A stretch of DNA of 64,000 nucleotides from Convolutriloba macropyga. Lineage: Eukaryota. The number at the start of each line of letters is the position of its first letter. Position 1 is the first letter of the stretch. Location: positions 72,230,001 to 72,294,000 of the forward strand of contig NC_134473.1 of the NCBI RefSeq assembly GCF_964194025.1, read 5' to 3'. Shown here one piece after another: positions 3,544-35,758 of the stretch. The notes beneath the pieces were generated by a model. The model saw only the letters and a program-made list of their open reading frames with translations. It was not told the DNA's origin and ran no database searches. A program made the translations under genes and the position numbers.

Positions 3544-3957
3544 TCAAACCTCTCATGATTGGACTTCTAATAATTGAAGGTTTAAATACCCACCTTTAGT
3601 TACGTAACATAGTGATATATAATACTACCATCCTATGAAACCTCTGATAAGACTCGACTCAGATTCCTGTTTACAATTTTTGGCATATGAACAGAGACCC
3701 TGACGCTGTAAGTCTCGGCGCAGATTTTTCTTTATTGATCCAAATTGAATTGGGCTGGAATCTCAACCTGTGTTAAGCCTAAAACAGACAAAGTTAACTG
3801 AGAGATAGTTATCGTTTACAGCCAACTTAAGTCAAAGTTTCTTAAACTGAAAACAAGAAAAAAATAAAGAACAAAATTTTCAAGTCTTTAATTGCACCTG
3901 AAAGCATTTTATTTGAAAAGTAAAACAAATGTCAATGTCGAACATCGAATATTTTAG

Positions 3958-4227
3958 ACTTCCCTCCAACATTAGAGGAAAACTTGATGCAATATTACGA
4001 CCCAACATTCGAGGACCTGGCCTCTCAGTTCATAGACACCCAGCAGCTGTTTGAAATAGTAATCTCTCCTCTGAAAGTTTTGATCAAAATGTGTAGGTGG
4101 AAGAACAAAGACTGCTTGAATGATCAGAACTGGAAGTTTATAATGACCCGAAACGTGATGTGTTTGGAGTTCACGCCCCCTGACCGAAAAGTCGAAATGC
4201 CCAGCCAGAATTTACAACTTATGTTTG
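3958..4227 (+). CDS. DEG/ENaC (amiloride-sensitive channel family) gene, internal exon; upstream exons lie outside the window
   Basis: ttttag|...G|gttagt splice sites. Encodes LIKMCRWKNKDC...FIMTRNVMCLEF...NLQLMF, matching the DEG/ENaC CxFxGxxC...CYTFN...GLxL region. Phase 1 joins exon 26622. Confidence 0.8.
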
Positions 4228-5414
4228 GTTAGTCAAACTCACGAGGTAAAAACTTGACTCATTGGTTGAGCTCAGAATCCATCCCAGGTTTAGGCATCAA
4301 CTTATGAAAAAACTCAAAAAATCTAGTGGAGAGGGCTCGCTTATTGACTAAAATTACACAGTCGAGCGTCCCGCTAAAGTCTTTTAAAGGGTCGAGTAAA
4401 AGTCTTTGCATGAGCTTTTGGGCCAAAGCATGCTATTTTCATGGATCGAGAAATACCATTTTAATTGTTGAACTAAGGACAATTCAACGGATGAGCAGGG
4501 TCTTTTCATGCGCAGAGCAAAAGACTTTTTTTTTGATAAGTCTTTCCTAGAAAAATTCGAAACTCTTTCAATATATGCTTCACATCAGTACATTAAGAAA
4601 AAGCAATTCATGTATCACGACTAACGAGCATTGTAACAGAGCACTCCAAATTGAAAGACAGTTGGAAAGTTACAAAATAAATTAAGATTTTTTGTGACTC
4701 TTTAGATAAAGCAGTTATCGCAGCTAGATTACATTGCCACATTACACCTGATTAAATGAATCTAGGCAGTTACATTACGATGCAGAGGTATACCCAAATC
4801 GTCACGGGCAGATATGCCCGATGCGTGTATCTCGTGTTCGTTTTTTACTATGTTAATACATTAAAAGGAAGGGAATATCGTATCCCGTGTTCGCAAAAGT
4901 GTCCTAACTTTAGCCGCGAAATAGAAGTACAAACTTAATAACCTATTTTTCGCGCGAGTTGTATCACGCATCTACTCCATTTATGTATCGATTTTTCGCA
5001 CGCAATGTAGCTGACCTTAATCACTCTAGCCATTATGAAAAAAACGGAATCTTTTAATTGTTTTCCCTTCAAAATTATGAGACGTCATTTTTTCAAACAA
5101 CCAGCTTTTTTGATTGACTACTTCTCTTCAGAAAAGCATTAGTTTAAAAGATCGTACTGAAGTACAGCGTGAGTTTAAATTAATTTTGTGTCAAGCTTAA
5201 GTGCATTATGGTTCTTAACTGCTTCATTAAAAAAATACAAGAGATTTTTGATTCATGATTTTTGATTCATCATCTTGGATTTAGATATTTTGCTCTGACA
5301 AACGCTTAATGAAAACTAGTCGACATTGTTTGGCATGTCTATAACAGCTCTCTCGTAACGGGTTCGCATCACTCCTCACACTTTGAGATCCAATACATTT
5401 CATCTGGCTTTTTC

Positions 5415-8400
5415 TATTTGGTTAGGCGAACTAGTTCGATCTGCGATCTTTTATGCACGTCAGTTCCTTGGCTAGGGTACCAAGCAAAATAAACCCTATC
5501 TAAACCAACGATGAACGAACAAGGGGTGCGTCCTGATTTTTTAGGGTCGTCGTGCAAGATAAACGCTTGAAAATCTGATTATGAAAACTCAAAAGTCTAA
5601 ACGCTAACTCTCGAAATTCTTGAATTATTAGCGGTGCTTACTTGAAATGACGTTCGTTTTAGTTTAAAAAATCGAGACAATCTATAACTAAAATTGAGAC
5701 AATTTTTGGAAGTGAAAACTGAAAAGCTTTTACACTATTCTTTTTTTAGTGGTAGATCGCGTGACTTTGTTTAGCGCAGAGGGTAAAACTGGTGGTGGTT
5801 TTTAGCGATTTAATTTGTTGACTCTATGTTCTGATCAGTAAAAGACTTCTGGTACAACAAATGTTTTCACGCTACTTTTCCTGGAAATGGTTGTTTTTTT
5901 TTTCAAAACAGTCGGGAGAAAAAACAATTCCATGTAAAGTATCTAATTTTTTATTTTTAAAATATGATCACTGGGTGGTATTGTGCTTGTTGTAAACTAT
6001 CAATATAGTGGAAACAAAAGGCATTTTTGTGTGGCGGCTGAAAGAAATTGCGTTCCCAATATCCACTAAGTCTCCCCTGAGTCTAGCTCTATTGAACATT
6101 AATCATAACGATTACCCTCAGTGGAACTATTGTTATTTAAATTGTTTAAAGCAATAACTTCCTTAATTTAAAAAGTTTTATCAGATTTAATGCTTTCAGT
6201 GTCTCTCTAAGTGGGAGAAAACGGGAACTTTGTTCATACCTCTTGCTCTAGGAGTTCTGGGTGGCTTCTCTTCACCTAAAAATTGTCTGAAAAGATTGTC
6301 CAAACTATCAGATATTCGTAGTTTCTATTCTGAGGGAATACTGGTGGCTTACGGAAATATTGTCTCAGTAGTGACCTATAATTGCTATCAGAGGATCAGC
6401 ATCTATGCTTTTGGTGAAGTCGAGTCTATCCCTTTTTGTTGAAGTCGAGATGTGTATCCATGAACTTGACTTATTGACAAGTAAACTCCCTTGTGATGAA
6501 AGCGCAATTGTTTCTGTTTACTCAATTGCTGCTTGATCAGAAAAAAATACTGAATTTATCATTATTTTCTCACAAAGCCGTTGAATTGACATTGAGGTGG
6601 ATGAACTCTGAATTGCTTCATTGTCGATTCTACAGTTTTGTTATTGCTGATGTCTTAAAAAATGAATTGAAACTTCCAACCAGTGTGCTAATGAAGACAG
6701 TAATGTGCATATAGGTGCCACCGCTCCAATGAGTCGCGAGTTGGCACCTATATACACATTACGTAATTTCCCTTTTGTTTTATCCAATATATTTCCCTTT
6801 ATAGTGAGACCGTGTAACTTGCACGTAAAACCAACTTGCGAAAATAACTTGAATAAAAAACCAGCTTAACTCTTTTATAAGTTTTAATTTGTTCGCTATT
6901 ATTTATTTAAAAAACTAATTAACTATAAAATCTAAACTCACCATTACAACCTTTAATACCTCTATCATCAAATGGATCAATAGCTATCTTGTATTGTTCT
7001 TTTGTTTCAAATGATGTTTCTTGCTATCAATAGTGTAATTAGTTACATATTTACTATTTGGTTAGGCGAACTAGTTCGATCTGCGATCTTTTATGCACAT
7101 CAGTTCCTTGGCTAGGGTACCAGGCAAAATAAACCCTATCTAAACCAACGGTGATTGACCAAGGGGTGCGTCCTGATATTTTAGGGTCGTCGTGCAAGAT
7201 GAACGCTTGAAGATCTGATTATGAAAACTCGAAAGTCTAAACGCTACCTCTCGAAATTCTGAATTATTAGCGGTGCTTACTTGAAATGACGTTCGTTTTA
7301 GTTGAAGAAATCGAGATAATCCATAACTAAAATTAAGACAATTTTTGGAAGTGAAAACTGAAAAGCTTTTACGCTTATACTTTTTTTAGTCGTAGATCGC
7401 GTGACTTTGTTTAGCGCAGAGGGTAAAACTGGTGGTGTTTTTTAGCGATTTATTTTGTTGACTCTATGTTCTGATCAGTAAAAGACTTCTGGTATAAAAA
7501 TGTTTTCACGCTACTTTTCCAGGAAATGGTTGTTTTTTTTTCAAAACACTCGGGAGAAAAATAAATTCCATGTAATATATCTAATTTTTTATTTTGAAAA
7601 TGTGATCACTGGGTGGCATTGTGCTTGTTGTAAACTATCAATATAGTGGAAACAAAAGGCATTTTTGTGTGCCGGCTGAATTGCGTTCCCAATTTCCAAT
7701 AATTCTCCCCTGAGTCTAGCTCTATTGAACATTAATCATAACGATTACCCTCAGTGGCATTATTGTTATTTAAATTGTTGACAGCAATGACTTCGTTATT
7801 TTAAAAAGTTTTATCAGATTTAATGCTTTCAAAGTCTTTCGAAGTGGAGAAAACGCGATCTTTGCTCATACCTCTTCCTCCAGCAGTTCTGGGTGGCTTC
7901 TCTTCACCTAAAAATTGTCTGAAAAGATTGTCCAAACTATCAGATATTCGTAGTTTCCATTCTTAGGTACTACTGGTGGCTTCAGGAAATATTGTCTCAG
8001 TAGTGACCTACAAATGCTATCAGAAGATCAGCTTCTATGCTTTTGGCGAAGTCGAGTCTATCCCTTTTTGTTGAAGTCGAGATGTGTATCCCTAAACTTG
8101 ACCTATTGACAAGTAAACTCCCTTGCGATGAAAGTGCAATTGTTTCTGCTTACTCCATTGCTGCTTGATCAGAAAGAAATGCTGACGTTATCATTATTCT
8201 CTCACAAAGCCGTTGAATTGCATTGAGGCGGTGAACTCTGAATTGCTTGTTTGTCGGTTCTACAGTTTTGTTATTGCTGATGTCTTAAAAAATGAATTAA
8301 AACTTCCAACCAGTTTGCTAATGAAGACAGTAATGTGCATATAGGTGCCTCTGCTCCATTGAGTCGCGAGTTGGCACCTATATACACATTACTTTATTTC

Positions 8401-8830
8401 CCTTTTGTTTTATCCACTATATTGCCCCTTCATATTCCCTCAAAATCTATCAATTCCTGTCTCATTTAGTGCAGTCTAATAGTATCGAGTTAAGCTGGTA
8501 ATTAACCGTTATCAGACGGATAGTTCGAATTCTATCCCAATTGTCTTCAGTGGACGTATCCCGGATACTAGTGTAACTAGTGAGACCGTGTAAGAAGCAC
8601 GTAAAACCAACTTGCGAAGATAACTTGAATAAAAAACCAGCTTAACTCTTTTATAAGTTTTAATTTGTTTGCTATTATTTATTTAAAAAACTAATTAACT
8701 ATAGAATCTAAACTCACCATTACAAACTTTATTACCTCTATCATCAAATGGATCAAAAGCTATCTTGTATTGTTCTTTTGTTTCTAATGATGTTTCTTAC
8801 TATTAATAGTGCAATTAGTTACATGTTTAC
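5415..8830. repeat. Tandem duplication of ~1.3 kb host intron DNA plus the element's left terminus and PolB 3' end (copy 1 ~5415-7058, copy 2 ~7053-8830)
   Basis: Collinear near-identical text from ctatttggttaggcgaactag (5415 and 7054) onward. Copy 1 lacks the ~150 bp segment 8430-8578. Confidence 0.92.
8329..8393. other. Terminal stem-loop of the element (20-21 bp arms, 23 nt loop); further copies at 6699-6762 and 26070-26133
   Basis: agtaatgtgcatataggtgcc-N23-ggcacctatatacacattact, one mismatch between arms. Confidence 0.85.
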
Positions 8831-11800
8831 TTTTTGCATCATAAATAGCATTTTTATAGTCTTCAATAGTAATTTGGTTTTTAATAGTAGCTTTGGTTAT
8901 GCCTTTTGACTTTTTCTCTCCTTCTCTTTTAACTATAGTATAACAATATGCTTTTGATTTAAGGAAACGGGCTTCTATAATAGTATCATTATGTAGCTCA
9001 TCCTCCATCTTGCCTAACTCATTATTATGTAATATATCTTTTATCTTATTCACTTCAGTTTCCATATCACTATCTAAAGGAGCATTTATGTTTAAAAATA
9101 CGCTATCAGTATCTGTATAATGATAACTACAATCTAATTTTATCAAAATTATCGTATATAGCTTTATACAAAAATAGTTTAACTTTCTCCAATATAACAA
9201 AACCAACACAATTAAACGTATCAAACTTATTTTAGTTCTTGTTTTATGTACAGCCACTAGTTCATAATCAAACTTCACAGCCTTTTTAAAACTAATATTT
9301 TCTACTAACTTAACTTATCTATCCAAATCATTAACTAACTCTACATCCTGTCTAATATATACATTTTCTATTGTTATTCTATAGAAGGCATTATTCATTA
9401 ACTTAAAGAATACATCACCAAAATTATCCCCCTAGCTTTATCTTCTTCCCATTTCTGAGTATTAAACTCAATATAAGCTTTAACCGCTCACTCTTACTAT
9501 ACTCTATCTTTTGCTTAATTGTAACATCTTCCAACCTTAAACTTTTACTTAAATACCATTCCACCATCTCTCCATCAATTACATAAGGCTTCTTATCTGT
9601 TGAATTCAACATCAACTTCTCATTTTGTTTAAATCCTTTCTTTTTATTTTCATTTTGATTGTCTGTAAACTGATCAATGTTAGCCTTTGTCTTATCTGGA
9701 AAGAATGGATAATTCTTTGTTTTCTGTTTCATCTCATCGGTATACTTTACATCAATGGTGTAGATATTAACCTTTAGTAGAGCTAGAGCTAGTATATACT
9801 ACACTGTTACAAACAATTATCTCAGCAGTAGGTAAAGCTTGCACCATAGCAGAGGAATATAATGAGCTGAAGTCTAAGTATTTTAAATAATTCTCTTTCC
9901 CAGTATACTCAGGATCTATTTCTTTATTTTTATATTTCACATGACAATCACCTAATACTGAAGCTAACCGACCTCTAATACCATGTTGTATTGTATCATA
10001 AATATTAACTGTATTTTCTTCATAATGTTTATGTCTAACATTAGTATATTTCAATCAACATAACCAAGTTAATCCAGGAGTAGAACATGTATAACAAGGA
10101 TCTATTTCATAATATTCTAAACACTCAGCTATTAAACTTTCAAATACATCTACCGATAATAAAACATCAGTTTTTAGATATAACATCATATAATTTTTTA
10201 TTGTTTCACATCCAGACTCTTTCCAACAATCTAACGCTTGCTTATACTCTTCATTAGTAACAACACTTTGTTTCAAAATAGAATAGAATACCTCCTTACG
10301 TGGTAATGATGATTCATTAAGTTTATCTGCACTAACTAACCATTCATATGGGAATATACCTTTACGTCTATCTAACTTAAATTTGTTTAATGTTACACAC
10401 TCTTTATGACTCAATGTTTTACTTATAGCATCAAAGCTAAGTTGATGGAAGATCCTAAACGCATCTTATGCTTTAGCATAACCCATATCAATACAAATGT
10501 AAATCTCATCAGTTTTTGTTAATACTTTAAGTCTAATCTTCTCTGCTAGTTTAGTTATAAATAGGTGATTATCATAATTAGTAGAATTAAATGCATATAT
10601 TGGTACAAAAGCGTTCTTATCTTGGAATTTATACTCATTGAGAGCATATCCTCTAAATTTACCATTTAGGTGATCATGATTTCTAGCAATGTCTTCACCC
10701 ATATACTCGTTACAATAATCACACTCAATACTAGGGTGAATAATACTATCTTCTTTTAAGGGAAAATTTATACTAAAAATCTCTTTAAACAATTTATTAT
10801 AATAACTCATACTACTTATAAACCAATCAACTATGCCATCTCCACAATAACTTTCATACTTATCCTCTAATATATCAGGATAATCAATTTTTATATATAA
10901 CTCACAAGCAATAGGAATATGTTTTCTGTTTTTATTATACATTCAAATTCATAATACGTAGCAAATGGTACGCCATTTTTAAAATGGAACTTATCAAACT
11001 TTAGATAATCATCACGATGGAATGTTCATCTTCCTGTATGGTTCTGTGTATCACACAATTCAAAATGTTTATTTTATGCTTGTTCAGTCAGAAATGATAC
11101 ACAACATTTTCGACATGGATAACATTTATGTTCAGATGAATTTCTTAATGAGAATGATACATCCTTACCTAGCAAATAATGATTATCCCAGTATAAAATA
11201 TTACATCCTTTTGGATCATTATGATTAATTAAAACAGGATTAATAGTTTTTTTTTATTTAGATTAATTACATTAAATAATACTTTATCTTTGTTGAACTC
11301 TTGTATTTTCTGTAAAGCTTTATATCCATAAGGAGGTGGAAGCCTCGGTAATTTTATCTCATTAATATACTCTGGTATTTTTATAATTTCTAACTCTATT
11401 GGGATGGTATTTAGCAGGATGTAGATAAGCAAGTAAACACCACAATAAACATTTATTATCATATTTATGTATATTAATTATATATTTAGACGTGAAGGGC
11501 AATTCATTAGTACAACCACCAGTAGGATAAAACCTGTGTTTATACATAGTTCTTTTAACAAATCTATTCATGCTCCAATCAGATTGTTTCATCTCATGTT
11601 CTTGTATTATAGTCTCATGTTCACAATTGAACATATCCAAGTCATAGGGAACATTATATTGTCTAGTCATTAGTCTAAATGTGAATTCATTTTCTTCTAA
11701 CTTATCATTTGAAGGTTTTGTATACCTTAATACATCAAAGGTGTTAAATTTTTTATGGGGATTCATGTTATACATTGTCTCGAATACTTTCAAGAATTTG

Positions 11801-12681
11801 GGATCTCCATAATTACTACATGTTATCATTATTTGATTATTTTTCATAACACAATCTAATCCTCACTCATTAACTTTCTCTCTCCACTTACCATCAACAA
11901 GTCTTGTCTGTCTAACATTTTCTTTATGATCATCTTAATCTTTGTGTTTATTTTTATTATTATATTTAGTTTTATATATATCGCAAGAACCTGTATTTGA
12001 TGTATGGGTCTTTGATAATGATTCTCTATCTTTAGATGAGTCTCTATCTTTAGATGATTCTCTATCCTTATCTTTTCTTTTAACGTTATCTGGATGCATC
12101 TTTGTTTTTAAATATTGATTCACATTATATTGACTTAGAGTAGTCTTACATGTTACACATTCAAACTTAATCCCATTCTTTATTATTTCTCCACTATTTA
12201 GTCTTACATTATTCCTATGTTTTAATGTTTCTATATGTTTATTATATTCAGTATTTTTATCTAGATACATATCACAACTATCAAAATACTTTATTCCCTA
12301 TAGTTCAGGATAATGTTTATTTTTTTGTTCTATATCTTCAATAGTTTCATTTCTATTATATAATCGCTCATTCGTTTTATGTTTAAATAATTGAATGTAT
12401 CTAGCGTAATTCTTTTGAGTTAACTCTTGATTACAATCTTCGCATCTAGTCTCATTAGTATTATTTTAGGTTTATTAAACATAGACAATATCATCAGATG
12501 AATCTGAATCTGAATCTTTAGATGATTCTCTATCTTTAGATGATTCTCTATCTTTGGATGATTCTCTATCGTTAGATGATTCTCGTTCTTTAGATGGATC
12601 CAAATCTGACTCTAAATCTATAGATGATTCTCTATCTTTAGATGATTCTCGATCTTGCTTCAGTCTTTCGCAATGACTCAT
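8695..12681 (-). pseudogene. polB: Protein-primed-type family B DNA polymerase (Polinton/Maverick-like), unit A, essentially full length (~1330 codons) but broken by stops and frameshifts
   Basis: In order: C2H2-like fingers, NKCLLWCLLAYLHP, CxxC...DH..GKFRG (endonuclease VII-like), YDNHLFI (ExoII), RKGIFPYEW, YLKTDVLL (ExoIII), YLDFSSLY (motif A), FFKLMNNAFY (B), YTDTDS (C), KSKAY, KSKGI. Confidence 0.93.
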
Positions 12682-12994
12682 GCATATCCTCTTCTCGTTG
12701 TTTTAATTTTGCAGTCTGTTTATCATACGACTCCTTTATTTGACAAACATCTGTTCGTTTGTTTTCTTCTTGTAGTTTGTTTTTCTTTAACAACATTTGG
12801 GTTACTATGCTAGTAGAACTAGATTGGGCTTGTCCACTTCCAAATTGAGCTCGCTCACTTTGACATTGGACTTGTCAACTTCCAGATTGGACTTCAATTC
12901 CAGTTTGAATGTTATCGTTGTAATCTTGTGCACTTATTTTTATACGACAACTTTTGAAATAACATTATTTATGTAATTTTTCACATTAAAAATT

Positions 12995-13276
12995 ATTAGT
13001 ATTAAGTGCGATAAATGTAAAGATAAGGCTTGGTGTTGGAGTTGTGATATATGTCAAAGTGAGCCTTTCATATGTTTTGTATGTAAGGAAACTAGAACAT
13101 ATAGAGAGAGGCATGATCATATGTATATACATTATAATGGTCCTAATCAAAATTTAGTATGTAGAAAGTGTCAAGTAAATAAACATATCCCTCACTATAG
13201 ATTTAAACATTTCACTTGTAGGCTATGCTTGTATCTCAATAGATATAGATTTGGTCGTACTAAAAAAGATTTATAG
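12995..13276 (+). pseudogene. Small Cys/His-rich protein, unit A (frame open, start codon lost)
   Basis: Translates ISIKCDKCKDKAWCWSCDIC..., homologous to ORF 21252-21536. Confidence 0.75.
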
Positions 13277-13294
13277 AACATGTAAATAAACATG

Positions 13295-14029
13295 GAGAGA
13301 ACACACCATCTGTATAGGTTAACTTAAATAGTTCACGACAATTCTTTGAAAGTGTACAAGAGAAGTTTATAAATGATTCTCATTTATATAGATTGAAATA
13401 TTATAAATATGGTATAATAAATTATGGTACTATTGGTGACTATTATATTGTATGAGATAAAGATAAAAATTGTGTATATGATTCTAGAAATGGCGATCTT
13501 GAATTTGAGAAGTATATTGATTATACAGAGTTTAAAGAAAAAGAATTTAATATATTAAGTAGTTATTTAATAGATAGAATGGTAGAACCAACACATATGA
13601 AACCAAATGATTTAATGTTCTACTTTGAAGAATATTTAAATTTTAAAGAAACAAACAAACCATTCAATTTTTATAAAACTTATACGAAAGTAAAAAGTAT
13701 ATGTAATAAGATCCATAGTGGATATATTGCTATATTTGGGATAATTACTATATTTGGATTTGCATATAGTTACAATCAAAAATATGGTGACAATAATAAA
13801 AATACTAATAATGATAAAAATTAATGGTATAGATATAAGGAACATAGATAAGGCCAAAATTAATTTCAGAATTGGTAAGAAGGTATCAAAAGGTTCTGGT
13901 GAAATTAATAATAACAATAAAACAATAGATATAAAACGTATTTTAGCCATTAGTCTTATATCTATTTATGCAAACCATAATCTTAATAAATCTACAATTA
14001 AAACTGACGTTAATATAAAGAGAATGTAA
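13295..14029 (+). pseudogene. ATPase gene 3' half, unit A; Walker A/B region deleted
   Basis: Sequence jumps from just after the Cys-rich ORF to the RENTP region; continues into MVEPTHMKPN...; frameshift near 13820. Confidence 0.8.
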
Positions 14030-14618
14030 TATTGAAATTGATGATAGGGGTGATCATTCAGAACATAAATAAATAACACATTGTAATAAGTTACATAATA
14101 TTTTAAATGTAAGATGTATGAAAAGTATGCAAAGACAATATAGTGGTCATCATTTTAGAGATGAATGCAAAGATAATCGTACAGGTTCTATAACATCAGC
14201 ACATAGTTATATTGATTATACTGATATTAATAATAGTGATAGTGATAGTGATTGTAATGATAATATTGATATCAATAAGGTTTTTAATGATATGAAAGAT
14301 AGTATTGTAGAGAATTTAGAATATTACATTGGAAATGAATTTAAAAAAGGTATAAATGAGATAGAAACAGAAATTACAAATGATTTATAAACAGGGGTAA
14401 TATTAAAAGGAAAAGTAAAGAAATTAAAACAACTAGAATTTGTTTTCTAAGCAAAATTGAAACGAATAGAGATTGTTTTTTATAAAACTGGTGGTTTATG
14501 TAAAGAATGTTGTTCAGAAAATGTTCGATGTCCAAAATGTAATATTATGTTAATTAGATCTTCTCTCAGTAAACATATAAAAAGGCCACATAATAGCCAA
14601 AATAGTAATTCTACTTAA
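14005..14618 (+). pseudogene. Zn-finger protein, unit A
   Basis: Homologous to 19569-20084. C-terminal GLCKECC..CPKC..RSSLSKH motifs in shifted frames. Confidence 0.75.
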
Positions 14619-14619
14619 A

Positions 14620-15055
14620 ATTTGGCATTAGATTAAAAACTACAAAAACTACACAGATTATATACAATCCGAGGATAATTCCGCATTATGCGCATAAATT
14701 TTCCGCATATTGCGCACTAAAACTACAAATCACATAGAATAACAGTAGATTACATAGGAAAGCATTAGATTACATAGAATAACATTAAATTACATTGAAT
14801 AACACGGATTAATATATAGCCCAAGATAATTCCGCACGCGTTCAGAATTATCTTGGGCTATATATTAATCCGTGGTATTCTATGTAATCTAATGTTATTC
14901 TATGTATTCTAATGTTATTCTATGTAACCTACTGTTATTCTATGTAATTTGTAATTTTAATGCGCAATATGCGGAAAATTTATGCGCATAATGCGGAATT
15001 ATCCTCGGACTTGTATATAAATTGTGTAATTTTTGTAATTTTTAATATAATGCCA
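14620..15055. repeat. Palindromic junction 1 (head-to-head join of units A and B), axis ~14839
   Basis: ...tatagcccaagataattc cgcacgcgttca gaattatcttgggctata...; arms carry 20-bp tandem repeats (agattacatagaataacatt-like). Confidence 0.93.
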
Positions 15056-15059
15056 AATT

Positions 15060-15662
15060 TTATCTAGAATTATTATTTTGGCTATTATGTGACATTTTGT
15101 ATGGTTACTAAGAGAAGATCTATTTAAGCTAAAATTACATGTTGGACATGGAACTATTCCTGAACAACGTTCCTTACATAAACCCCAGTTGTATAAAAAC
15201 AATCTCTAATCTTTTCAATTTTGCATAAACAGCAAGTTCTATTTGTTTTAGTTTCCTTACTTTCCTTCTTTATATTACCCCCTGTTTTTAAATCATTTAT
15301 AATTTCTGTTTCTATCTCATTTATAATTTCTGTTTTCATTCATTTATAATCTCTCTTTGTAAATTATCTTTCAATTCATTAAAAACCTTATTGATATCAA
15401 TATTATCATTACAATCCTTATCACTATCACTATTATTAATATCAGTATAATCAATATAACTATGTACTGATGTTATAGTACCTGTACGATTATCTTTGCA
15501 TTCATCTCTAAAATGATAACCACTATATTGTCTTTGCATACAATTCATACATCTTACAATTAAAATATTATGTAACTTATTACAATGTATTATTTATTTA
15601 TTTTCTGAATGATCACCCCTATCATCAATTTCAATATTAAATTCACTACATATTAACGTCAG
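15060..15662 (-). pseudogene. Zn-finger protein, unit B
   Basis: ORF fragments 15336-15548, 15154-15339, 14999-15202 (CCLCKIEK..., CKERC..CPTC..RSSLSNH). Confidence 0.75.
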
Positions 15663-16343
15663 TTTTAGATGTAGATTTAATAAGATTATGGTTTGCATAA
15701 ATAGATATAAGACTAATGGCTAAAATACGTTTTATATCGATTGTTTGATTGTTATTATTAAATTCACCAGAACCTTTTGTTACCTTCTTACCAATTCTGC
15801 ATTTAATCTTGGCCTTATCTATGTTCCTTATGTCTATACCATTAATTTTATCATTATTAGTATTGCTGTTATTGTCACCATGTTTTTGATAGTAACTATA
15901 TGCAAATCCAAATATAGTAATTTTACCAAATATAGCAATATATCCACTATGGATCACATTACATACACTTTTTACTTTCGTATAAGTTTTATAAAAATTG
16001 AATGGTTTGTTTGTTTCTTTAAAATTTAAATATTCTTCAAAGTAGAACATTAACTCTTTTGGTTTAATATGTGTTGGTTCTACCATTCTATCTATTAAAT
16101 AACTACTTAGTAAAATAAATTCTTTTTCTTTAAACTCTGTATAATCAATATACTTCTCAAATTCAAGATCGCCATTTCTAGAATCATATACAACCTTTTT
16201 ATCTTTATCTAAAACAATATAACAGTCACCAATAGTACTAAAATTTAATATACCATATTTATAATGTTTAAATCTATATAGATTAGAATCAATTTTAAAC
16301 TTCTCTTGTCATCTTTCAAAGAATTGTCGTGAACTATTTAAAG

Positions 16344-16398
<55 letters not shown>

Positions 16399-16860
16399 GC
16401 TTTTGTGTTCTCTCTTGCTTTAGTATTTAAATCTGTTGCAATATGACCCACACATATTATATTAATATTGTGTTGTCTACCTTTAGAGTATACTGAATCT
16501 AGAGCTGGTAATCTAATGTTTTCGCCCAGATCATCAAATATAATAGCGCTATTAGCAAAGTTATCTATATTATCTAAAAATTTTAAATCATCAATGCCGT
16601 ATGCGTTATAACCCTTCCACTCACTGGCATCAATACAGAATACCTTAACACTATCATACAAACCACAATAATCTTTTATAATTGTTGTTTTGCCTGAATT
16701 AGATGGACCAAAAAAAATAAAGTTATGTTTCTACATTTCAAGTGGTTCTTATAGAACATTCCTATATCCCACAAATCTCACCCAAAAAGCAGAATATTTT
16801 TCATAATCCCAATAAGCAATAATAATAATTTATAATAACATATTAAATAACGGGAAAACT
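15646..16860 (-). pseudogene. A32/FtsK-HerA-type ATPase with C-terminal hydrophobic segments, unit B
   Basis: GPSNSGKT at ~16690-16710, IIFDD, SKGRQHN. Disrupted by a (TA)n tract. Frame reads through ...GDCYIVLDKD...DRMVEPTH... into ORF 15646-16086. Confidence 0.85.
16345..16398. repeat. (TA)n microsatellite inside the unit B ATPase gene
   Basis: Direct read; gives the IYIYIY artefact in the ORF track. Confidence 0.97.
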
Positions 16861-16912
16861 AAATAAATTTTTATTAGGACTAAACTTCAATATTATATTT
16901 CTTTACATGTTC

Positions 16913-17195
16913 TATAAATCGTTTTTAGTACGACCAGGTCTATATCTATTGAGATACCAGCATAACCTACAAGTGAAATGTTTAAATCTATAGTGAGGGA
17001 TATGTTTATTTACTTGACACTTTCTACATACTAAATTTTGATTAGGACCATTATAATGTATATACATATGATCATGCCTCTCTCTATATGTTCTAGTTTC
17101 CTTACATACAAAACATATGAAAGGCTCACTTTGACATATATCACAACTCCAACACCAAGCCTTATCTTTACATTTATCGCACTTAATACTAATAA
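16913..17195 (-). pseudogene. Small Cys/His-rich protein, unit B
   Basis: Nearly identical inverted copy of 12995-13276. Confidence 0.75.
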
Positions 17196-17506
17196 TTTTT
17201 AATGTGAAAAATTACATAATTAATGTTATTTCAAAAGTTGTCGTATAAAAATAAGTGCACAAGATTACAACGATAACATTCAAACTGGAATTGAAGTCCA
17301 ATCTGGAAGTTGACAAGTCCAATGTCAAAGTGAGCGAGCTCAATTTGGAAGTGGACAAGCCCAATCTAGTTCTACTAGCATAGTAACCCAAATGTTGTTA
17401 AATAAAAACAAACTACAAGAAGAAAACAAACGAACAGATGTTTGTCAAATAAAGGAGTCGTATGATAAACAGACTGCAAAATTAAAACAACGAGAAGAGG
17501 ATATGC

Positions 17507-18996
17507 ATGAGTCATTGCGAAAGACTGAAGCAAGATCGAGAATCATCTAAAGATAGAGAATCATCTATAGATTTAGAGTCAGATTTGGATCCATCTAAAG
17601 AACGAGAATCATCTAACGATAGAGAATCATCCAAAGATAGAGAATCATCTAAAGATAGAGAATCATCTAAAGATTCAGATTCAGATTCATCTGATGATAT
17701 TGTCTATGTTTAATAAGCCTAAAATAATACTAATGAGACTAGATGCGAAGATTGTAATCAAGAGTTAACTCAAAAGAATTACGCTAGATACATTCAATTA
17801 TTTAAACATAAAACGAATGAGCGATTATATAATAGAAATGAAACTATTGAAGATATAGAACAAAAAAATAAACATTATCCTGAACTATAGGGAATAAAGT
17901 ATTTTGATAGTTGTGATATGTATCTAGATAAAAATACTGAATATAATAAACATATAGAAACATTAAAACATAGGAATAATTTAAGATTAAATAGTGGAGA
18001 AATAATAAAGAATGGGAGCAAGTTTGAATGTGTAACATGTGAGACTACTCTAAGTCAATATAATTTGAATCAATATTTAAAAACAAAGATGCATCCAGAT
18101 AACGTTAAAAGTAAAGATAAGGATAGAGAATCATCTAAAGAAAGAGAATCATCTAAAGATAGAGAATCATTATCAAAGACCCAAACATCAAGTACAGGTT
18201 CTTGCGATATATTTAATACTAAAAATAATAATAAAAATAAACACAATGATTCAGATGATCATAAAGAAAATGTTAAACAGAAAAAACTTGTTAATGGTAA
18301 GTGGAGAGAGAAAGTTAATGAGTTAGGATTAAATCATAATGTGAAGTATAATCAAATAATGATAGAAGTAATAATTATGAAGATCCCAAAATCTTGAAAG
18401 TATTAGAGACAATGTATAACATAAATCCCCATATAAAGTTTAAGAGCTTTGATGTAGTAAGGTATACAAAACCTACAGATGATAAGTTAGAAGAAAATGA
18501 ATTCACATTTAGACTAATGATTAGAAAATTTCATGGTCCCTATGACTTGGATATATTGAAAAGTGAACTCGAGACTGGAATGCAAGAACAAGCGTGAAAC
18601 AATCTCGTTGGAGCATGCAAAGATTTGTTAAAAGAACTATGTATATACAGAGGTTTTATCCTACTGGTGTTTGTACTACTGAGTTAGCATTCACGTCTAG
18701 ATATATTTTTAATACACATAATAATAAAAATAAATGTTTATTGTGGTGTTAACCTGCTTATCTACATCCTGCTAAAGCCCATCCCAAAAGAGTTAGAAAT
18801 TATAAAAATACCAGAGTATATTAATGAGATAATATTACCGAGGCTTCCACCTCCTTATGGATATAAAGCTTTACAGAAAATACAAGAGTTCAACAAATAT
18901 AAAGTTTTATTTAATGTGTTCAATCTAAATAAAAATAAAACTATTAATCCTGTATTAATCAATCATAATGATCCGGACAGATGTATTATATTATAC
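17507..18996 (+). pseudogene. polB: PolB N-terminal third, unit B, truncated and fused to a terminal-repeat arm
   Basis: ORF 17507-17713 is identical to 12475-12681. Homology to PolB stops after INHNDPDRCIILY at ~18996. Confidence 0.88.
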
Positions 18997-18999
18997 CTA

Positions 19000-19402
19000 T
19001 ATAGATTAAAAATTACAAAAAATATACAGATTATATACAAGTCCAAGGATAATTCCGCATTATGCGCATAAATTTTCCGCATATTGCGCATTAAAATTAC
19101 AAATTATATAAAATAACAGTAGATTACATAGAATAGCATTAGATTACATAGAATAACATTAGATTACATTATATAACACGGATTAATATATAGCCCAAGA
19201 TAATTCCGCACGCAGGCGGAATTATCTTGGGCTATATACTAATCCGTGGTATTCTATGCAATCTAATGCTATTCTATGTATTCTAATGTTATTCTATGTA
19301 ATTTGTAATTTTAATGCCCAATATGCGGAAAATTTATGCGCATAATGCGGAATTATCCTCGGACTATATATAATCTATGTAACTTTTGTAATTTATAATC
19401 TA
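19000..19402. repeat. Palindromic junction 2 (~200 bp arms), axis ~19212
   Basis: ...gcccaagataattccgc acgcag gcggaattatcttgggc...; same 20-bp subrepeats as junction 1. Confidence 0.93.
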
Positions 19403-19412
19403 ATGCCAAATT

Positions 19413-20048
19413 TTAACTAGAATTATTATACTGGCTATTATGTGGCCTTTTTATATGTTTACTAAGAGAAAATCTTTTTAAAATAATATTAAATGTTGGA
19501 CATGGAACTTTTTCTGGACAACAATTTTACATAAAACCCCAGTTGTATCAAAACAATCTCTAATCTTTTCAATTTTTGCATGAACAACAATTTCTATTAA
19601 CTTTGGTTTCCTTGTTTTCCTTCTTTATATTACCCCCTGTTTTTAAATCATTTATAAATTTTGTTTCTATCTCTTTTATATCTTCTTTTTGTATTTCATT
19701 TATAATCTCTATTCGTAAATCATTTCTAATGTAATACTTTAAATTCTCTACAATACTATCTTTTATATCATTAAAAACATTATTGATATCAATATTATCA
19801 TTACAAACACTATCACTATTATTAATATCAGTAAAATCAATACAACTATGTACTGATGTCATAGAACCTGTACGATAATATTTGCATTCATTTCTAAAAC
19901 TAGAACCACTATATTGTCTTTGCATACATTTCATACCTCTTAAAAATAAATTGTTATGTAACTTAATATAATGTATCATTAAATCAAGTTCTGGATAATC
20001 ACCACTATCAACAATTTCATTATAACATTCTCTACATATTAACGTCAT
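19413..20048 (-). pseudogene. Zn-finger protein, unit C (likely start MTLICREC)
   Basis: N-terminal CxxC...H...H, acidic/helical middle and C-terminal CxxC clusters after a frameshift at ~19575. Confidence 0.78.
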
Positions 20049-21202
20049 TTTTAGTTGTAGAATTATTAAGATTATGGGTTGCATAAATAGATATAAGACT
20101 AAAGTCTAATATACATATTATATCTAATGTTTCATTGTTATTATTAAATACACCATAAGCTATTGTTCCCTTCTTACCAATTCTTAGTTTAATCTTGGCC
20201 TTATCTATGTTCCCTATATCTATACCATTTATTTTATCATTATTAGTATTTTTATTATTGTCACCATTTTTGATAGTAACTATATGCAAATCCAAATATA
20301 GTAATTATCCCAAATATAGCAATATATCCACTATGGATCTTATTACATATACTTTTTACTTTCGTATAAGATTTATAAAAATTGAATGGTTTGTTTGTTT
20401 CTTTAACGTTTAAATATTCTTCAAAATAGAACACTAACTCATTTCGTTTAATATGTGTCTGTTCTGCCATTCCATCTTTTAAATAACTACTTAGTATATT
20501 AAGTTCTTTTTCTTTAAAATCTGTTTGATCAACATACCACTCAATATCAAGATCGCCATTTCTAGAAACATTTACAACATTTTTATCTTTATCTCATACA
20601 ATATAATAGTCACCAATAGTACTGTAATTTATTATACCATATTTATAATATTTAAATCTATATAGATTAGAATCAATTTTAAACTTCTCTTGTACTCTTT
20701 CAAAGATATGCCGTGAACTTTTTAATGTAACATATAAAGCTGGTGTGTTCTCTCTTGTTTTTGTATATAAATCTGTTACAATATGACCCACACATATTAT
20801 ATTCATATTGTGATGTCTACATTTAGAGTGTAATGAATCCATATCTGGTAATCTAATGTTTTCTCCTATATCATCAAAAATAATAAGACTATTAGCAAAG
20901 TTATCTATATTATCTAATAATTTTAAATCATCAATGCCGTATGCGTTATAACCCTTCCACTCACTGGCATCAATACAGAATACATTAACGCTGTCATAAA
21001 AACCACAATATTCTTTTATAAATAATGTTTTGCCTGAATTAGATGGCCCATAAATAATAAAGTTATGTTTCTTCATTTCAAGTGGTTCTTGTAGAATATT
21101 CCTATATCCCAAAAATCTCGTCCTAAAATCAGAATATTTATCATAATTCCAATAAGCAATTATAATAATTAATAATAACATATGAAATAATGGGAACACC
21201 AA
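20032..21202 (-). pseudogene. A32/FtsK-HerA-type (virus packaging-like) ATPase with hydrophobic N- and C-terminal segments, unit C (~390 codons reconstructed)
   Basis: Walker A IIYGPSNSGKT, Walker B LIIFDD, arginine-finger-like SKCRHHN, ICVGH. TGA at 20594, then homologous continuation in ORFs 20261-20470 and 20032-20295. Confidence 0.88.
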
Positions 21203-21251
21203 ATAAAATTTTATTAGGACTAAACTTCAATATTATATTTCTTTACATGTT

Positions 21252-21536
21252 CTATAAATCGTTTTTAGTACATCCAAATCTATATCTATTGTGATACAAG
21301 CATAACCTACAAGTGAAATGTTTAAATCCATAGTGAGGGATATGTTTTTTTACTTGACATTTTTTACATAGTAAATTTTGATTAGGATCATTAAAATGTA
21401 TATCCATGTGATCATGTCTCTCTCTATATGTTATAGTTTCCTTACATACAAAACATAAGAAAGGCTCAATTTGACACATATCACAACTCCAACACCAAGT
21501 CCTATCTTTACATTTATCGCTTTTAGTACTAATCAT
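21252..21536 (-). CDS. Small Cys/His-rich putative Zn-binding protein (94 aa), intact in unit C
   Basis: ATG-initiated ORF with repeated CxxC and His residues; frame conserved in all three units. Confidence 0.75.
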   Translation of the reverse strand: MISTKSDKCKDRTWCWSCDMCQIEPFLCFVCKETITYRERHDHMDIHFNDPNQNLLCKKCQVKKHIPHYGFKHFTCRLCLYHNRYRFGCTKNDL

Positions 21537-21539
21537 TTC

Positions 21540-21720
21540 TAATTATAAAAAATTACATAAATAATATTATCTCAAATTTTTTCGTATAAAAATAAGTGCA
21601 CGAGATTCCAACGATAACATTCAAACTGGAAATGAAGTCCAATCTGGAAGTTGACAAGTCCATTGTCAAAGTGAGCGAGCTCAATTTGGAAGTGGACAAG
21701 CCCAATCTAGTTCTACTAAC
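21540..21720. promoter_or_regulatory. Putative divergent promoter between the Cys/ATPase/ZnF block and PolB (copies at ~12810-12990 and ~17200-17380)
   Basis: Non-coding gap between divergent genes with gtataaaaa (~21584) and repeated caat(c/t)tggaagt(t/g)gacaag(t/c)cca motifs. Confidence 0.55.
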
Positions 21721-21911
21721 ATGGCTACCCAAAAGTTTTTAAATAAAAACTAACTACAAGAAGAAAACAAACAAATAGACGGAGAAAGACAAAAAGGAGG
21801 AAGCAGAAAAAGATTTAGAATCAATCAGAAGGTTTAATCAAATAAATGAAGAAATAAAGGAGTCGTATGATAAACAGACTGCAAAATTAAAACAACGAGA
21901 AGAGGATATGC

Positions 21912-24900
21912 ATGAGTCATTGCGAAAGACTGAAGCAAGATCGAGAATCATCTAAAGATAGAGAATCATCCATAGATTTAGATACAGATTCGGATCCACA
22001 TAAAGAACGAGAATCGTCTAAAGATAGAAAATCATCCAAAGATAGAGAATCATCGAAACATAGAAAATCATCTAAAGATTCAGATTCAGAATCATCTGAT
22101 GATATTGTCTATGCTAAAAAGCCTAACAAAAATACTAATAAGAATAGATGCGAAGATTGAAATCGAGAGTTAACTCAAAAGAATTATGCTAGATACATTC
22201 AATCACTTAAACATAAAACGAATGAGCGATTATATAACAGAAATGAAATTATTGAGAGTGCTTATAATGTTGGAGTAAAAGTTACTATTGAAGATATAGA
22301 ACAAAAAAAAGATAAACGGCAAAAGAAAAAGAGGGAATAAAATATTGTGATAGTTGTGATATGTATCTAGATTATAATACTGAACACTATAAACATATAG
22401 AAACATTAAACCATAGGAAAAATGCAAGACTAAATATTGGGGAATTAATAAAGAGTGGGAGTAAGTTTGAATGTGTAACAGGTAAGACTACTCTAAGTCA
22501 ATATAGTGTGGAGCAACGTTTAAAAACAAAGATGCATCTAGATAATTTTAAAGGTAAAGCTGAGGATAAAAAATCATCTAAAGATAGAGAACCATCTAAA
22601 GATAGAGAATCATTATCAAAGACCCAAACATCAAGTACAGGTTCTAGCGATATATGTCATACTAAATATAATAATAAAAATAAACACAATGATTCAGATG
22701 ATCATAAAGAAAATGTTAAACAAAAAATTTGTTGATGGTAAGTGGAGAGAGAAAGTTAATGAGTGAGGATTAGATTGTAATATGAAATATAATCAAATAA
22801 TGATAACATGTAGTAATTATGGAGATCCCAAATTCTTAAAAGTATTAGAGACAACGTAAAACATAAGTCCCCGTATAAAATTTAAAAGCTTTGAAGTAGT
22901 AAGGTATACAAAACCTACAGATGATAAGTTAGAAGAAAATGAATTATTATTTAGACTCAAGACTAGACAATATAATGGTCCCTATGACTTGGATATGTTG
23001 AAAAGTGAACTTGAGACTAGAATGCAAGAACAAGCGTGAAACAATCTCGTTTGAGCATGCAAAGATTTGTTAAGAGAACTATGTAAATACACAGGTTTTA
23101 TCCTACTGGTGGTTGTACTACTGAGTTACCATTCACGTCTAGATTTATTTTTAATATACATAATAATGAAAATAATTGTTTTTTGTGGTGTTTAATTGCT
23201 TATCTACATCCTGCTAAAGCCCATACCAAAAGAATTAGTAATTATAATTAACCAGAGTGTATTAATGAGATAAAATTACCAAGGCTTCCACCTCCTTATG
23301 GATATAAAGATTTACAGAAAATACAAGTGTTCAACTAATATAAAGTTTTATTCAATGTGTTTAATCTAAATAAAAATAAGACTATTAATCCTAATCCTGT
23401 ATTAATCAATCATAATGATCCAAAAATATGAAATATATTATACTCGATAATCATTATTTGCTATGTAATGATGTATCATTCTTATTAAGAAAATCATCTA
23501 AATAAAAATGTTATCCATGTCTAAAATGTTGTGTATCATTTCTAACTGAACATGCATTACGTAAACATTTAGAACTGTGTGATACACAGAACCTTATAGG
23601 AAGCAGAACATTTTATCGTGATGATTATCTAAAGTTTGATAAGTTCCACAATAAAAACAGAGTACCATTTGCTATGTATTTTGATTTTGAATGTCTAAAA
23701 AAAACAGAAAACACATTCCTACTGCTTGTGGGTTTTATATAAAAAGTGATTATCCTGATATATTAGATTAAAAGTATGAAAGTTATTGTGGAGATGGCAT
23801 AGTTGATTGGTTTATAAGTAGAATGAGTTATTATAATAATTTGTTTAAAGAGATTTTTAGCATAAATATTCCATTAAAAGAAGATCGTAGTACTCCACTT
23901 ACTATTGGGTGTTTTTATTGTAACGAGTATATGGGTGAAGACATTGTTAGAGATCATGTGAATTGTAAATTTAGAGGATATGCTAACAATAAGTGTAACC
24001 TCCAGGCTAAGAACAGTTTTGTACCAATATATACTTTTAATTCTACAAATTAAGATCATCACCTATTTAAAACTGAACTAGCAAAGAAGATTAGACTTAA
24101 AGTATTAACAAAAACTGATAAGAATTATATTTGTTTTGATATGGGTTATGCTAAAGCATTAGGTATGCTTAGGTTCTTCCATCCACTTAGCTTAGATGCT
24201 ATAAGTAAAACATTGAGTGATAAAGAGTGTGTAACGAAAAACAAATTTAAGTTAGATAGACGTAAAGGTATATTCCCATATGAATGATTTGATAGTATAG
24301 ACAAACCTAATGAAAAATCATTACCACCCAAGGAGGTTTTCTATTCTAAGTTGAAACAAAGTGGTATTACTAATGAAGAGTATAGGCAAGCGTTAGATTA
24401 TTGGAAAGAAGCTGGATGTGAAACAATAAAAGATTCTATGATGTTATATCTAAAAACTGATGTATTATTATCGGTAGATGTATTTGAAAGGTTAAGAGGT
24501 AAGTGTTTAGAATATTATGAAATAGATCCTTGTTATACATATTCTAATCCTGGATTAACTTGGTTACGTGGATTGAAATATACTAATGTTAGACTTAAAT
24601 ATTTTTAAAAAATACAGTTAATATTTATGATACAGTACAACCTGGTACTAGAGGTGGTTTAACTTCAGTGTTAGGCGATTGTCATGTGAAATGTTAAAAT
24701 AAAGAAGTAGATCCAGAGTATACTGGGAGATAGAATCATTTAAAACACTTAGAGTTCAACTCATTATATTCCTCTGTTATGGTTCAAGCTTTACCTACTG
24801 GTGACATAAGTGTTTGTAACGGTTTAGTATATACTGGCTCTAGCTCTACTAAATGTTATATCTACACCATTGATGTAAGGTATACCAATAAGATGAAACA

Positions 24901-25497
24901 AAAAACAAAGAAGTATCCATTCTTTCCACAAAAGACAAAGGCTAATATTGATCAGTCTACAGATTATCAAAATGAAAATAACAAGAAAGGATACAAACCA
25001 AGCGAGAAGTTGATATTGAAGTTAACAGATAAGAAGGATTATGTAATTGAAAGAGAGATGATGGATTGGTATTTTAATAAAGGTTTGAGGTTGGAAGATG
25101 TTACAAATAAGCAAGAGTTAGAGTATATTAAGAGTGAGTGGTTAAAGACTGATACTGAGTTTAATATTCAGAAAAGGAAAGAAGCTAAAGCTAAGGGTGA
25201 TAAATTTGGTGATTTATTCTTTAAGTTAATGAATAACGCCTACTATGGAAAAACAATAAAAATGTATATAATAGACAAGATAGAGTTATTTAATGATATA
25301 GGTAGATATATTAAATTAGTAGAAAGTATTAGTTTTAAATATGCTGTAGATTTTGATGATGAACTAGTGGCTGTACATAAAACAAGAGGTAATGTTAAGT
25401 TAGATAAGTTTAATTATATTGGTTTTTTTATATTAGAGAGAGCTATACTTTTTATGTATAAAATTCTATATACAATTACTTTCAGAAAAACTTAGAT
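21912..25497 (+). pseudogene. polB: Protein-primed-type PolB, unit C, truncated just before motif C
   Basis: Collinear with unit A PolB: CFYC..VRDH..FRGY, YLKTDVLLSVDVFE, FFKLMNNAYYGKT. Replaced after ~25497 by an inverted copy of the left end. Confidence 0.92.
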
Positions 25498-25499
25498 TA

Positions 25500-26108
25500 G
25501 TTTTAGTTATAACTTATCTCGAGTTCTTAAACTAAAACGAACGTCATTTCAAGTAAGCACCGCTAATAATTCAGAATTTCGAGAGGTAGCGTTTAGACTT
25601 ACGGTTTTCATAATCAGATTTTCAAGCGTTCATCTTGCACGACGACCCTAAAATATCAGGACGCACCCCTTGGTCAATCACCGTTGGTTTAGATAGGGTT
25701 TATTTTGCTTAATACCCTAGCCAAGGAACTGATGTGCATAAAAGATCGCAGATCGAACTAGTTCGCCTAACCAAATAGTAAATATGTAACTAATTACACT
25801 ATTGATAGCAAGAAACATCATTTGAAACAAAAGAACAATACAAGATAGCTATTGATCCATTTGATGATAGAGGTATTAAAGGTTGTAATGGTGAGTTTAG
25901 ATTTTATAGTTAATTAGTTTTTTAAATAAATAATAGCGAACAAATTAAAACTTATAAAAGAGTTAAGCTGGTTTTTTATTCAAGTTATTTTCGCAAGTTG
26001 GTTTTACGTGCAAGTTACACGGTCTCACTATAAAGGGAAATATATTGGATAAAACAAAAGGGAAATTACGTAATGTGTATATAGGTGCCAACTCGCGACT
26101 CATTGGAG
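25500..26108 (-). repeat. Inverted near-identical copy of ~6724-7333
   Basis: Contains the same PolB-3'/host duplication breakpoint (ccaaatagtaaatatgtaac) and the same ~150 bp deletion as at 6800. Confidence 0.92.
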
Positions 26109-26621
26109 TGCAGACACTTATATAAACATTACTGAAGATGTTATTTTTCAAAAGTTGACGACAATTATTGACAAAATAGTGTTATCAAAATAACGAAGCT
26201 TAAATGAAGCAGCAATTTTTGTCAATTTGAAATTAAATTATTTTAGACTTTCAAAAGTAAGAGGACAAAAACGAGGATAAAAAGTTACTATCACCGAAAG
26301 AATTTTGTCCAGAAAAATGAATCATAAAGATTTCCTGTAGGAAAAGGTCTTCTAAAATTCATTTCTTAGACGATTCCTTAAAAAAGACGATTCCTTAAAA
26401 TTAACCGTCAAAAACTATATACTTTTTAAGTTTCTTTAGCGCGTTTTAACCTGTTTTTACAACTATTTCGGTAATGTTTCACAAATTTTCAAAAAAAAGG
26501 TCACGCGTGAAAAGGTTCTTCATAAATTTTCGTTCCAGTTAGGATTTTACAAAAACGTATTTGAGATGCCACGATATTTTGTGCAGATTTTCAGCAACTT
26601 TTACACAGAAGTGTGTTGCAG

Positions 26622-35558: not shown

Positions 35559-35758
35559 NNNNNNNNNNNNNNNNNNNNNNNNNNNNNNNNNNNNNNNNNN
35601 NNNNNNNNNNNNNNNNNNNNNNNNNNNNNNNNNNNNNNNNNNNNNNNNNNNNNNNNNNNNNNNNNNNNNNNNNNNNNNNNNNNNNNNNNNNNNNNNNNNN
35701 NNNNNNNNNNNNNNNNNNNNNNNNNNNNNNNNNNNNNNNNNNNNNNNNNNNNNNNNNN
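35559..35758. other. Assembly gap (200 N)
   Basis: Run of N. Confidence 1.

Follow-up and report, generated by a model that had tools for sequence, protein, structure and literature searches.

A head-to-head axis in a decayed Maverick/Polinton-related element, probably part of an integrated replication concatemer

The site around position 14838 of the analysed DNA (a stretch of 64,000 nucleotides, hereafter the window) is probably, with a likelihood of about 0.6, the head-to-head axis of an integrated and long-dead concatemer of a ~6.7-kb unit derived from Mavericks/Polintons, produced by a hairpin-type turnaround replication. Integrated copies of the element are mirror dimers (tail-arm-axis-arm-tail) or larger even multimers, enclosed by 6-bp target-site duplications. 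They were integrated as units via their tail ends, the arms being identical at that time, and the axis was copied precisely between independent insertions. The same mirror layout was present in every other copy examined, so that the copies look like fossil replication concatemers. In the following, the arm end at the axis is called the head and the far end of the arm the tail.

Layout of the element in the window

The region 8329-26133 is one single integrated element, old and decayed, with a GC content of 25-29% as compared to 35-41% in the flanks. This low-GC block consists of a single long set of inverted and direct repeats (Table 1). Along the element, arm A is followed by axis J1, the truncated arm B, a 210-bp head remnant, axis J2 and arm C. 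An earlier note on this DNA had delimited the feature to 14620-15055. The non-coding head region at this place is real, but the inverted arms extend to 8329 and 26133 and thus measure ~6.5 kb each, far beyond the ~210 bp considered at that time. The left arm of axis J2 is just 210 bp long, which we infer to be the remnant of a fourth arm.

Table 1. Coordinates of the element, its arms, ends, genes and axes in the window. Damage counts for the polymerase and N-terminal parts of the large gene come from overlapping queries and are not additive.
Feature	Position	Strand	Description
Whole element	8329-26133		Decayed multimer of a ~6.7-kb unit: arms A, B, inferred fourth-arm remnant, C
Left target-site duplication	8323-8328		GAAGAC; 5/6 match to right copy
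Right target-site duplication	26134-26139		GAAGAT
Arm A	8329-14838	-	Full unit; head 14838, tail 8329
Arm B	14839-18996	+	Unit cut off: head and about 4.16 kb; inverted copy of the inner 4.16 kb of A
Head remnant	19002-19211	-	210 bp, orientation of arm A; forms left side of axis J2
Arm C	19212-26133	+	Full unit, inverted copy of A; head 19212, tail 26133
Arm A tail palindrome	8329-8393		65 bp; 21-bp stem, 23-nt loop
Arm C tail palindrome	26069-26133		65 bp; right end of element
Tandem duplication beside element	5410-8328		Period ~1640 bp; host flank and outer ~640 bp of arm A
Head regions of arms A and B around J1	14629-15049		Non-coding; 20-bp arrays, inner boxes 14674/14993, TGCGCA dyads
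Axis J1	14825-14852		Box, 6-nt core, degenerate inverted box
Axis J2	19199-19226		Box, 6-nt core ACGCAG, inverted box; arms perfect over 17 nt
Arm A large gene	8701-12937	-	Broken by numerous stops and multiple frameshifts: 12 stops and 4 frame changes in polymerase part, 16 stops and 1 frame change in N-terminal part
Arm A packaging-ATPase remnant	13288-13647	+	Broken; about 40% of gene left, 2 stops
Arm A small Cys-rich (CxxC) gene	14004-14591	+	Broken; 4 stops
Arm B Cys-rich gene	15056-15653	-	Broken; 1 frameshift, 1 stop
Arm B ATPase	16018-16874	-	Broken; 1 frameshift, 4 stops
Arm B large gene, start only	17251-18996	+	Broken; polymerase part 20% present, 2 stops; N-terminal part 2 frame changes, 7 stops
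Arm C small Cys-rich gene	19440-20084	-	Broken compared to relatives, 4 stops; 171-aa frame open at 19569-20084
Arm C A32-type packaging ATPase	20402-21214	-	Pox_A32; 1 stop; 202-aa frame open at 20594-21202
Arm C large gene	21592-25907	+	Zn fingers, HNH insert and protein-primed polymerase B; broken; polymerase part 6 frame changes, 15 stops; N-terminal part 6 frame changes, 11 stops

The details reported earlier for the head region were recovered. The arms of J1 join at 14838/14839, and folding of the region as single-stranded DNA left the same 12-nt tip (14833-14844) unpaired. The 20-bp tandem repeats, announced as three to four per arm, are present in 3.7 copies at 14732-14804 and again at 14876-14948, and a third array of 3.3 copies is located at 19103-19169. 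The TGCGCA dyads were found at 14689, 14711, 14961 and 14983. Two boxes had been attributed to each arm of J1: three intact copies of GATAATTCCGC exist (14674 and 14825 on the plus strand, 14993 on the minus strand), but the right copy at the axis is degenerate, with 2 mismatches in the 17-mer. J2 has kept its four boxes intact (plus strand, 19048 and 19199; minus strand, 19216 and 19347). For the 17-mer surrounding the box, 8 matches were counted in the window as compared to 0.14 expected, and none of 100 shuffles gave as many. A second use of the same point at 19212 had also been proposed. The axis does exist, with arms joining at 19211/19212, but it is best read as belonging to the same multimer after one internal deletion, rather than as the same point used independently a second time. 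Comparison of 14819-14858 with 19193-19232 revealed four differences, all in the central 10 nt, two of them being CpG-type transitions, and the 30 flanking nucleotides are identical.

Both outer ends of the element, which reads AGTAATG...CATTACT, close in an exact 65-bp palindrome. This palindrome folds far better than its shuffles (z = -4 to -8). Compensatory changes across subfamilies were observed in 5 of the 21 stem pairs, and 94% of the cells are paired, compared with at most 45% for slid partners. The orientation of the tail loop relative to the arm is the same in 12 out of 12 ends. Target-site duplications sit at the tail ends, none at the axis; at five loci, perfect 6-bp duplications (TTCTAG, ATAAGA, AAAATT, TGTAAC, TACTCC) surround the whole palindrome.

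An extra tail palindrome (6699-6763) lies within the tandem duplication adjoining the left end of the element, and a similar border duplication was seen in L001 at 3873-5175 (L numbers designate the loci described below). In some subfamilies, the subterminal tail harbours an extra block of ~200 bp (L002 5000-5250 and 11700-11900, L003 4680-4900, window 8400-8560) which resembles an inserted short repeat.

The host surroundings in the window include a DEG/ENaC channel exon at 29514-29891 (E = 5e-17), whose sole named relative is from the acoel Convolutriloba macropyga (55% identity), a CFAP95-like exon at 39988-40260 and a tRNA-Leu(TAA) gene at 48256-48338. This tRNA was the only Rfam match in the window and the loci. 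The host features identify the window as animal DNA. Satellite DNA repeating every ~604 bp, with units 88-96% alike, extends from 49833 to the window end at 64000; its period is 458 bp at 50432-51815. Positions 35559-35758 are a run of 200 N. In L013, the element is adjoined by the start (18506-20480) of a very long host ORF, called at 2618 residues and encoding an RZ-type zinc finger.

Gene content and relationship to Mavericks and Polintons

Each unit carries three genes occupying about 6 of the 6.7 kb, a large gene read tailward, and a packaging ATPase and a small Cys-rich gene read headward. All gene copies in the window are broken. The large gene combines zinc fingers, an HNH/endonuclease-VII insert and a protein-primed polymerase B. 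Its full-length relatives have about 1250 residues, with N-terminal C2H2 fingers followed by the protein-primed family B polymerase, which thus carries a long N-terminal extension. Matches to DNA_pol_B_2 were obtained for an ORF of the window (E = 2e-5), for an ORF of a relative (E = 2.4e-11) and for P0120 (E = 1.7e-20). The Endonuclease_7/HNH domain is inserted between the exonuclease motifs one and two of the polymerase. It was matched with E-values down to 5e-8 in full-length relatives and independently labelled 'endonuclease VII' by PHROGs, and its Cys..Cys..His.His..Gly..Arg-Gly core is invariant in 22 sequences sharing just 21-35% identity. A profile search of the nuclease region against solved structures (PDB) gave no match. 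The structure of the ExoI-HNH-ExoII segment of the decayed window copy, predicted with the help of 21 relatives, had a pLDDT of 69, and the fold search returned no significant match, HNH enzymes and T4 endonuclease VII appearing among the non-significant hits only. The ATPase matches Pox_A32 (arm C, E = 6e-7; family, down to E = 6.5e-9). The small Cys-rich (CxxC) protein has no family match.

The element is a non-autonomous relative of Mavericks/Polintons: genes, ends and duplications fit this class, but integrase and capsid genes are missing. Features in common are the protein-primed polymerase B, the A32/FtsK-type packaging ATPase, the low-GC island, the 6-bp target-site duplication and the 5'-AG...CT-3' ends. 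Duplications of Polintons measure 5-8 bp and typically 6 bp. The HNH insert in the polymerase is likewise shared with Polintons of the pPolB2 class (PMC10748475). In contrast to Polintons, the unit contains no integrase, capsid or protease genes. No arm ORF gave a family match to an integrase (rve); capsid and protease genes are absent from the unit, which offers no room for capsid or integrase genes, and the ATPase is all that represents the packaging/capsid module. Another difference is that the inverted repeat is the entire body, i.e. two mirror arms of 6.7 kb without a unique centre. Tail-to-tail junctions, multimers and a polymerase with N-terminal C2H2 fingers also set the element apart.

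The earlier note had seen a resemblance to parvoviruses or poxviruses, which did not hold for an element of Maverick/Polinton type. No HUH (Rep/NS1) nickase or SF3 helicase was found in any ORF, the unit yielded no RuvC-type resolvase and no cut-and-paste transposase, and parvoviral or poxviral genes were not found beyond the widely shared ATPase family.

Recurrence of the mirror layout and relative age of the arms

Relatives of the ATPase form 75 clusters with 59-80% identity in the aligned part, four of which alone comprise 127 members, and polymerase clusters have up to 173 members. These sizes point to a family of several hundred copies. The 11 ATPase places looked up all belong to a single ENA assembly (ERZ25071359). 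A spider and a scallop have annotated polymerase relatives, and further full-length relatives occur on contigs of 4-9 kb. In IMG/VR, searching with the axis pattern returned three unrelated short hairpins and no relatives, and the protein-based scan returned none.

Eleven loci, corresponding to 10 places, were fetched and mapped onto a natural reference arm (L004 11899-18655). The sample represents 9 loci of several hundred copies, some of them picked for having two ATPase genes on the contig, and all copies were seen as integrated, assembled DNA. Every informative place (the window and 8 loci) showed two arms head to head with the tails pointing outward. Clean mirror dimers of 13.2-13.6 kb were found in L004, L005, L012 and L013, and head-to-head pairs also in L002, L006, L010 and L011. 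Without exception, an arm is most closely related to the other arm or arms of its own copy, from which it differs by 4-12%.

One could think of an ordinary transposon inverted-repeat end, or of two independent elements landed head to head. The subterminal repeats agree with such an origin, and nothing else does. The earlier note had named as its own counter-case a head abutting host DNA as an ordinary terminal inverted repeat with target-site duplications. Such a head was found at none of the 10 axes in the 9 informative places, the duplications lie at the tails instead of the axis, and the axis is precise and identical between insertions, which makes this explanation extremely improbable. The same applies to an assembly artefact made of chimeric fold-back reads and to an endogenous parvovirus or poxvirus. 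Two contigs end near the head axis and a Pox_A32-type ATPase is present; however, arms differing to the extent given above are not mirror copies made at the level of reads, the structure recurs on 9 contigs with a coverage of 15-88x, and that ATPase, of a widely shared family, was the only gene found in common with such viruses. The contigs of L001 and L003 end 600-850 bp short of the head axis, suggesting that the assembler breaks at the palindromes of the element.

The neighbourhood of the axis is organised in the same way throughout the family. A terminal box (RRTAATYCYGC) adjoins the axis in every subfamily, and iteron-like arrays with a period of 10 or 20 bp, as had been postulated from the window, flank it at a distance of 25-90 bp in all subfamilies. 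This layout has outlasted the turnover of its sequence; the subfamily of the window is the only one with the inner box and the TGCGCA dyads. At the centre of the axis, 2-6 bases break the symmetry. L006, L011 and L012 are independent insertions with the same 28-bp axis, including the asymmetric core, apart from the strand. This identity indicates that the junction was templated and not end-joined. The earlier statement that the site is not a random inversion is therefore well founded, the head-to-head axis being family-wide and precisely inherited. The arms are equivalent about the axis and the choice of strand is arbitrary, so flip and flop would look alike at the head axis. In L002, L010 and L013, one head has lost 75-190 bp with one edge of the deletion on the axis, as commonly happens to long palindromes in host genomes.

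Multimers beyond the dimer were also detected. On contig ctg35372 (L006 with L003), arms 1 and 2 are joined head to head, and arms 2 and 3 tail to tail, with one 65-bp palindrome common to both arms at the latter junction; the contig stops inside arm 3. The three arms are equidistant (site patterns 65/72/58), as are three head-proximal arm pieces in L011 (17/16/9). In the window, the first 600 and the last 700 aligned columns show equal distances among arms A, B and C (33/26/33 and 32/33/45, respectively). Between columns of about 1800 and 3600, A and B are near-identical (118/11/16). The corresponding segments 11824-13293 and 16895-18364 are 97% alike and both unlike C, which indicates gene conversion between the two arms once the element had been inserted. 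The idea that arm B is a late copy of A, taken from overall identities, was dropped, as the site patterns describe a star-like mosaic with one conversion tract. At the level of substitutions, the three other heads all lie equally far from the 210-bp remnant. The equal ages of the arms in the window, L006 and L011 fit arms that were born identical and already joined when inserted.

The window probably received a tetramer, made up of A, B, a fourth arm and C, from which one internal deletion removed ~9 kb including the tail-to-tail junction. A tetramer with one internal deletion accounts for the window, and likewise for L011. A very early local rearrangement in the window is a possible alternative to a tetramer remnant. 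More specifically, J2 and arm B might have been made in place by fold-back and template switch at a fragile palindrome, as in inverted triplications. The junction 18996/19002 displays a microhomology of 2-3 bp, and the axis-anchored deletions in L002, L010 and L013 together with the border tandem duplications elsewhere illustrate that these palindromes are unstable in the host. A later local event, however, should nest B inside A over its whole length; the equidistance of A, B and C outside the single conversion tract, the equidistant remnant, the equal-age pattern in L011 and the multimer preserved in L006 all contradict this, so that an origin of J2 in place appears doubtful.

Known systems and the mode of replication

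[quoted passage not shown] The element shares with them short hairpin-capable palindromes at the very ends beside the duplication. Unlike the element, they live in protist hosts, mostly have no protein-primed polymerase and possess ordinary unique bodies. A text search of this preprint for such terms returned neither whole-body palindromes nor head-to-head/tail-to-tail multimers, and no description of either for the Maverick/Polinton class was found in the literature searched. The repeats of bidnaviruses are stated as not forming hairpins (PMC4061559). Foldback transposons (FB/Galileo), which have long inverted repeats made of tandem subrepeats and are moved by a cut-and-paste transposase, differ from the element, whose arms are gene-bearing unique sequence with tandem repeats of ~70 bp per head, and in which no transposase was found.

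The likenesses to parvoviruses and poxviruses are functional analogies. Rolling-hairpin replicative forms of parvoviruses (dimers and tetramers) have a unit of a few kb, terminal palindromes, alternating junctions sharing one palindrome and even multimers. By analogy, the element resembles them in its few-kb unit, terminal palindromes, alternating head-to-head and tail-to-tail junctions, both of which are present in L006, and even multimers. It differs by the absence of an HUH nickase, an SF3 helicase and a parvoviral capsid, and by encoding its own polymerase; its tail shows no flip/flop, and its head has no terminal palindrome separate from the arms. Hairpin telomeres of the poxvirus/asfarvirus type give rise to a mirror concatemer junction with few unpaired central bases, which is processed by a RuvC-like resolvase. 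A mirror junction with few unpaired central bases, an A32-family ATPase and a candidate structure-specific nuclease may be seen as the counterparts in the element. In contrast, its nuclease is a His-Me/HNH insert and not a RuvC-like resolvase, and the element is ~30 times smaller and integrates with target-site duplications.

Giant palindromes can also be made by the host, as in the rDNA of Tetrahymena or in inverted-triplication CNVs (PMC4689423, PMC10766186). A short inverted repeat near a DNA end or fork can act as the seed of a long palindrome. Centre-anchored deletions and arm-to-arm gene conversion are common to both. The mirror form of the element, however, is inherited by transposed copies at unrelated sites with their own target-site duplications, and it is thus a property of the element and not of one locus.

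A more serious competitor is a frozen snap-back, in which a single ancestral strand-switch generated a palindromic non-autonomous Maverick and the 13.4-kb dimer became the heritable genome. The dimer would be protein-primed from its two identical tails, the axis would have no function, and tetramers would be rare by-products of self-priming at the tail. The protein-primed polymerase with its long N-terminal extension and the Polinton-like ends and 6-bp duplications (PMC10748475) are in agreement with such a history, as are the tail loop that never inverts, the failure to see any free head end and the homology of the axis sequences across subfamilies. On the other hand, sister arms were found in every copy. 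In L006, head-to-head partners differ no more than tail-to-tail partners, which implies that no arm-specific differences are inherited and that the arms are made identical in each generation. The iteron-like arrays and the terminal box also keep their layout at the axis despite sequence turnover. Taken together, a frozen snap-back is considered rather unlikely.

The preferred reading is a replication by turnaround. At the head, arm one would serve as template for arm two, with the few asymmetric bases of the axis acting as the loop. An occasional and rarer turnaround at the tail palindrome would generate tail-to-tail junctions and tetramers. Integration would be limited to molecules with tails at both ends, presumably by an integrase provided in trans; such a restriction would explain the even number of arms and the heads never touching host DNA. 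Copying of the turnarounds, and their nicking or resolution, would most readily be ascribed to the strand-displacing polymerase with its inserted nuclease. In the window, arms A and B would later have exchanged sequence by gene conversion.

Several points argue against a turnaround. The orientation of the tail loop is constant, and a symmetric hairpin transfer would mix orientations. Of the concatemer junction with hairpin ends proposed in the earlier note, the first part gains from the tail-to-tail junction of L006 and the equal age of the arms; as to the second, no flip/flop orientations appeared at the tail. Gene conversion in situ could add to the pattern of sister arms. From a polymerase of the protein-primed type, one would expect a terminal protein, and not a hairpin, as the primer. 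HNH inserts are also found in the polymerases of ordinary Polintons, whose inverted repeats are normal (PMC10748475), hence the nuclease is not specific evidence for junction resolution.

For the host genome, the palindromes of the element are sources of local instability, evident as duplications at the borders, deletions anchored at the axis and gene conversion. At 13-27 kb, such palindromes cause assemblies to break and could mislead repeat annotators. The replication of Mavericks/Polintons is largely inferred and not observed, and the layouts of several hundred copies constrain its mechanism from sequence alone. Tentatively, and at somewhat less than even odds, the family may represent an animal Maverick/Polinton lineage which abandoned the usual layout of unique body and terminal protein for a small ~6.7-kb unit turning around at hairpin-like ends. 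If this is true, the integrated dimers and tetramers would preserve, for the first time in this virus-like class, intermediates of replication, and the element would be a living link from protein-primed replicons of Polinton type to the hairpin/concatemer strategy found in parvoviruses and in large nucleocytoplasmic DNA viruses.
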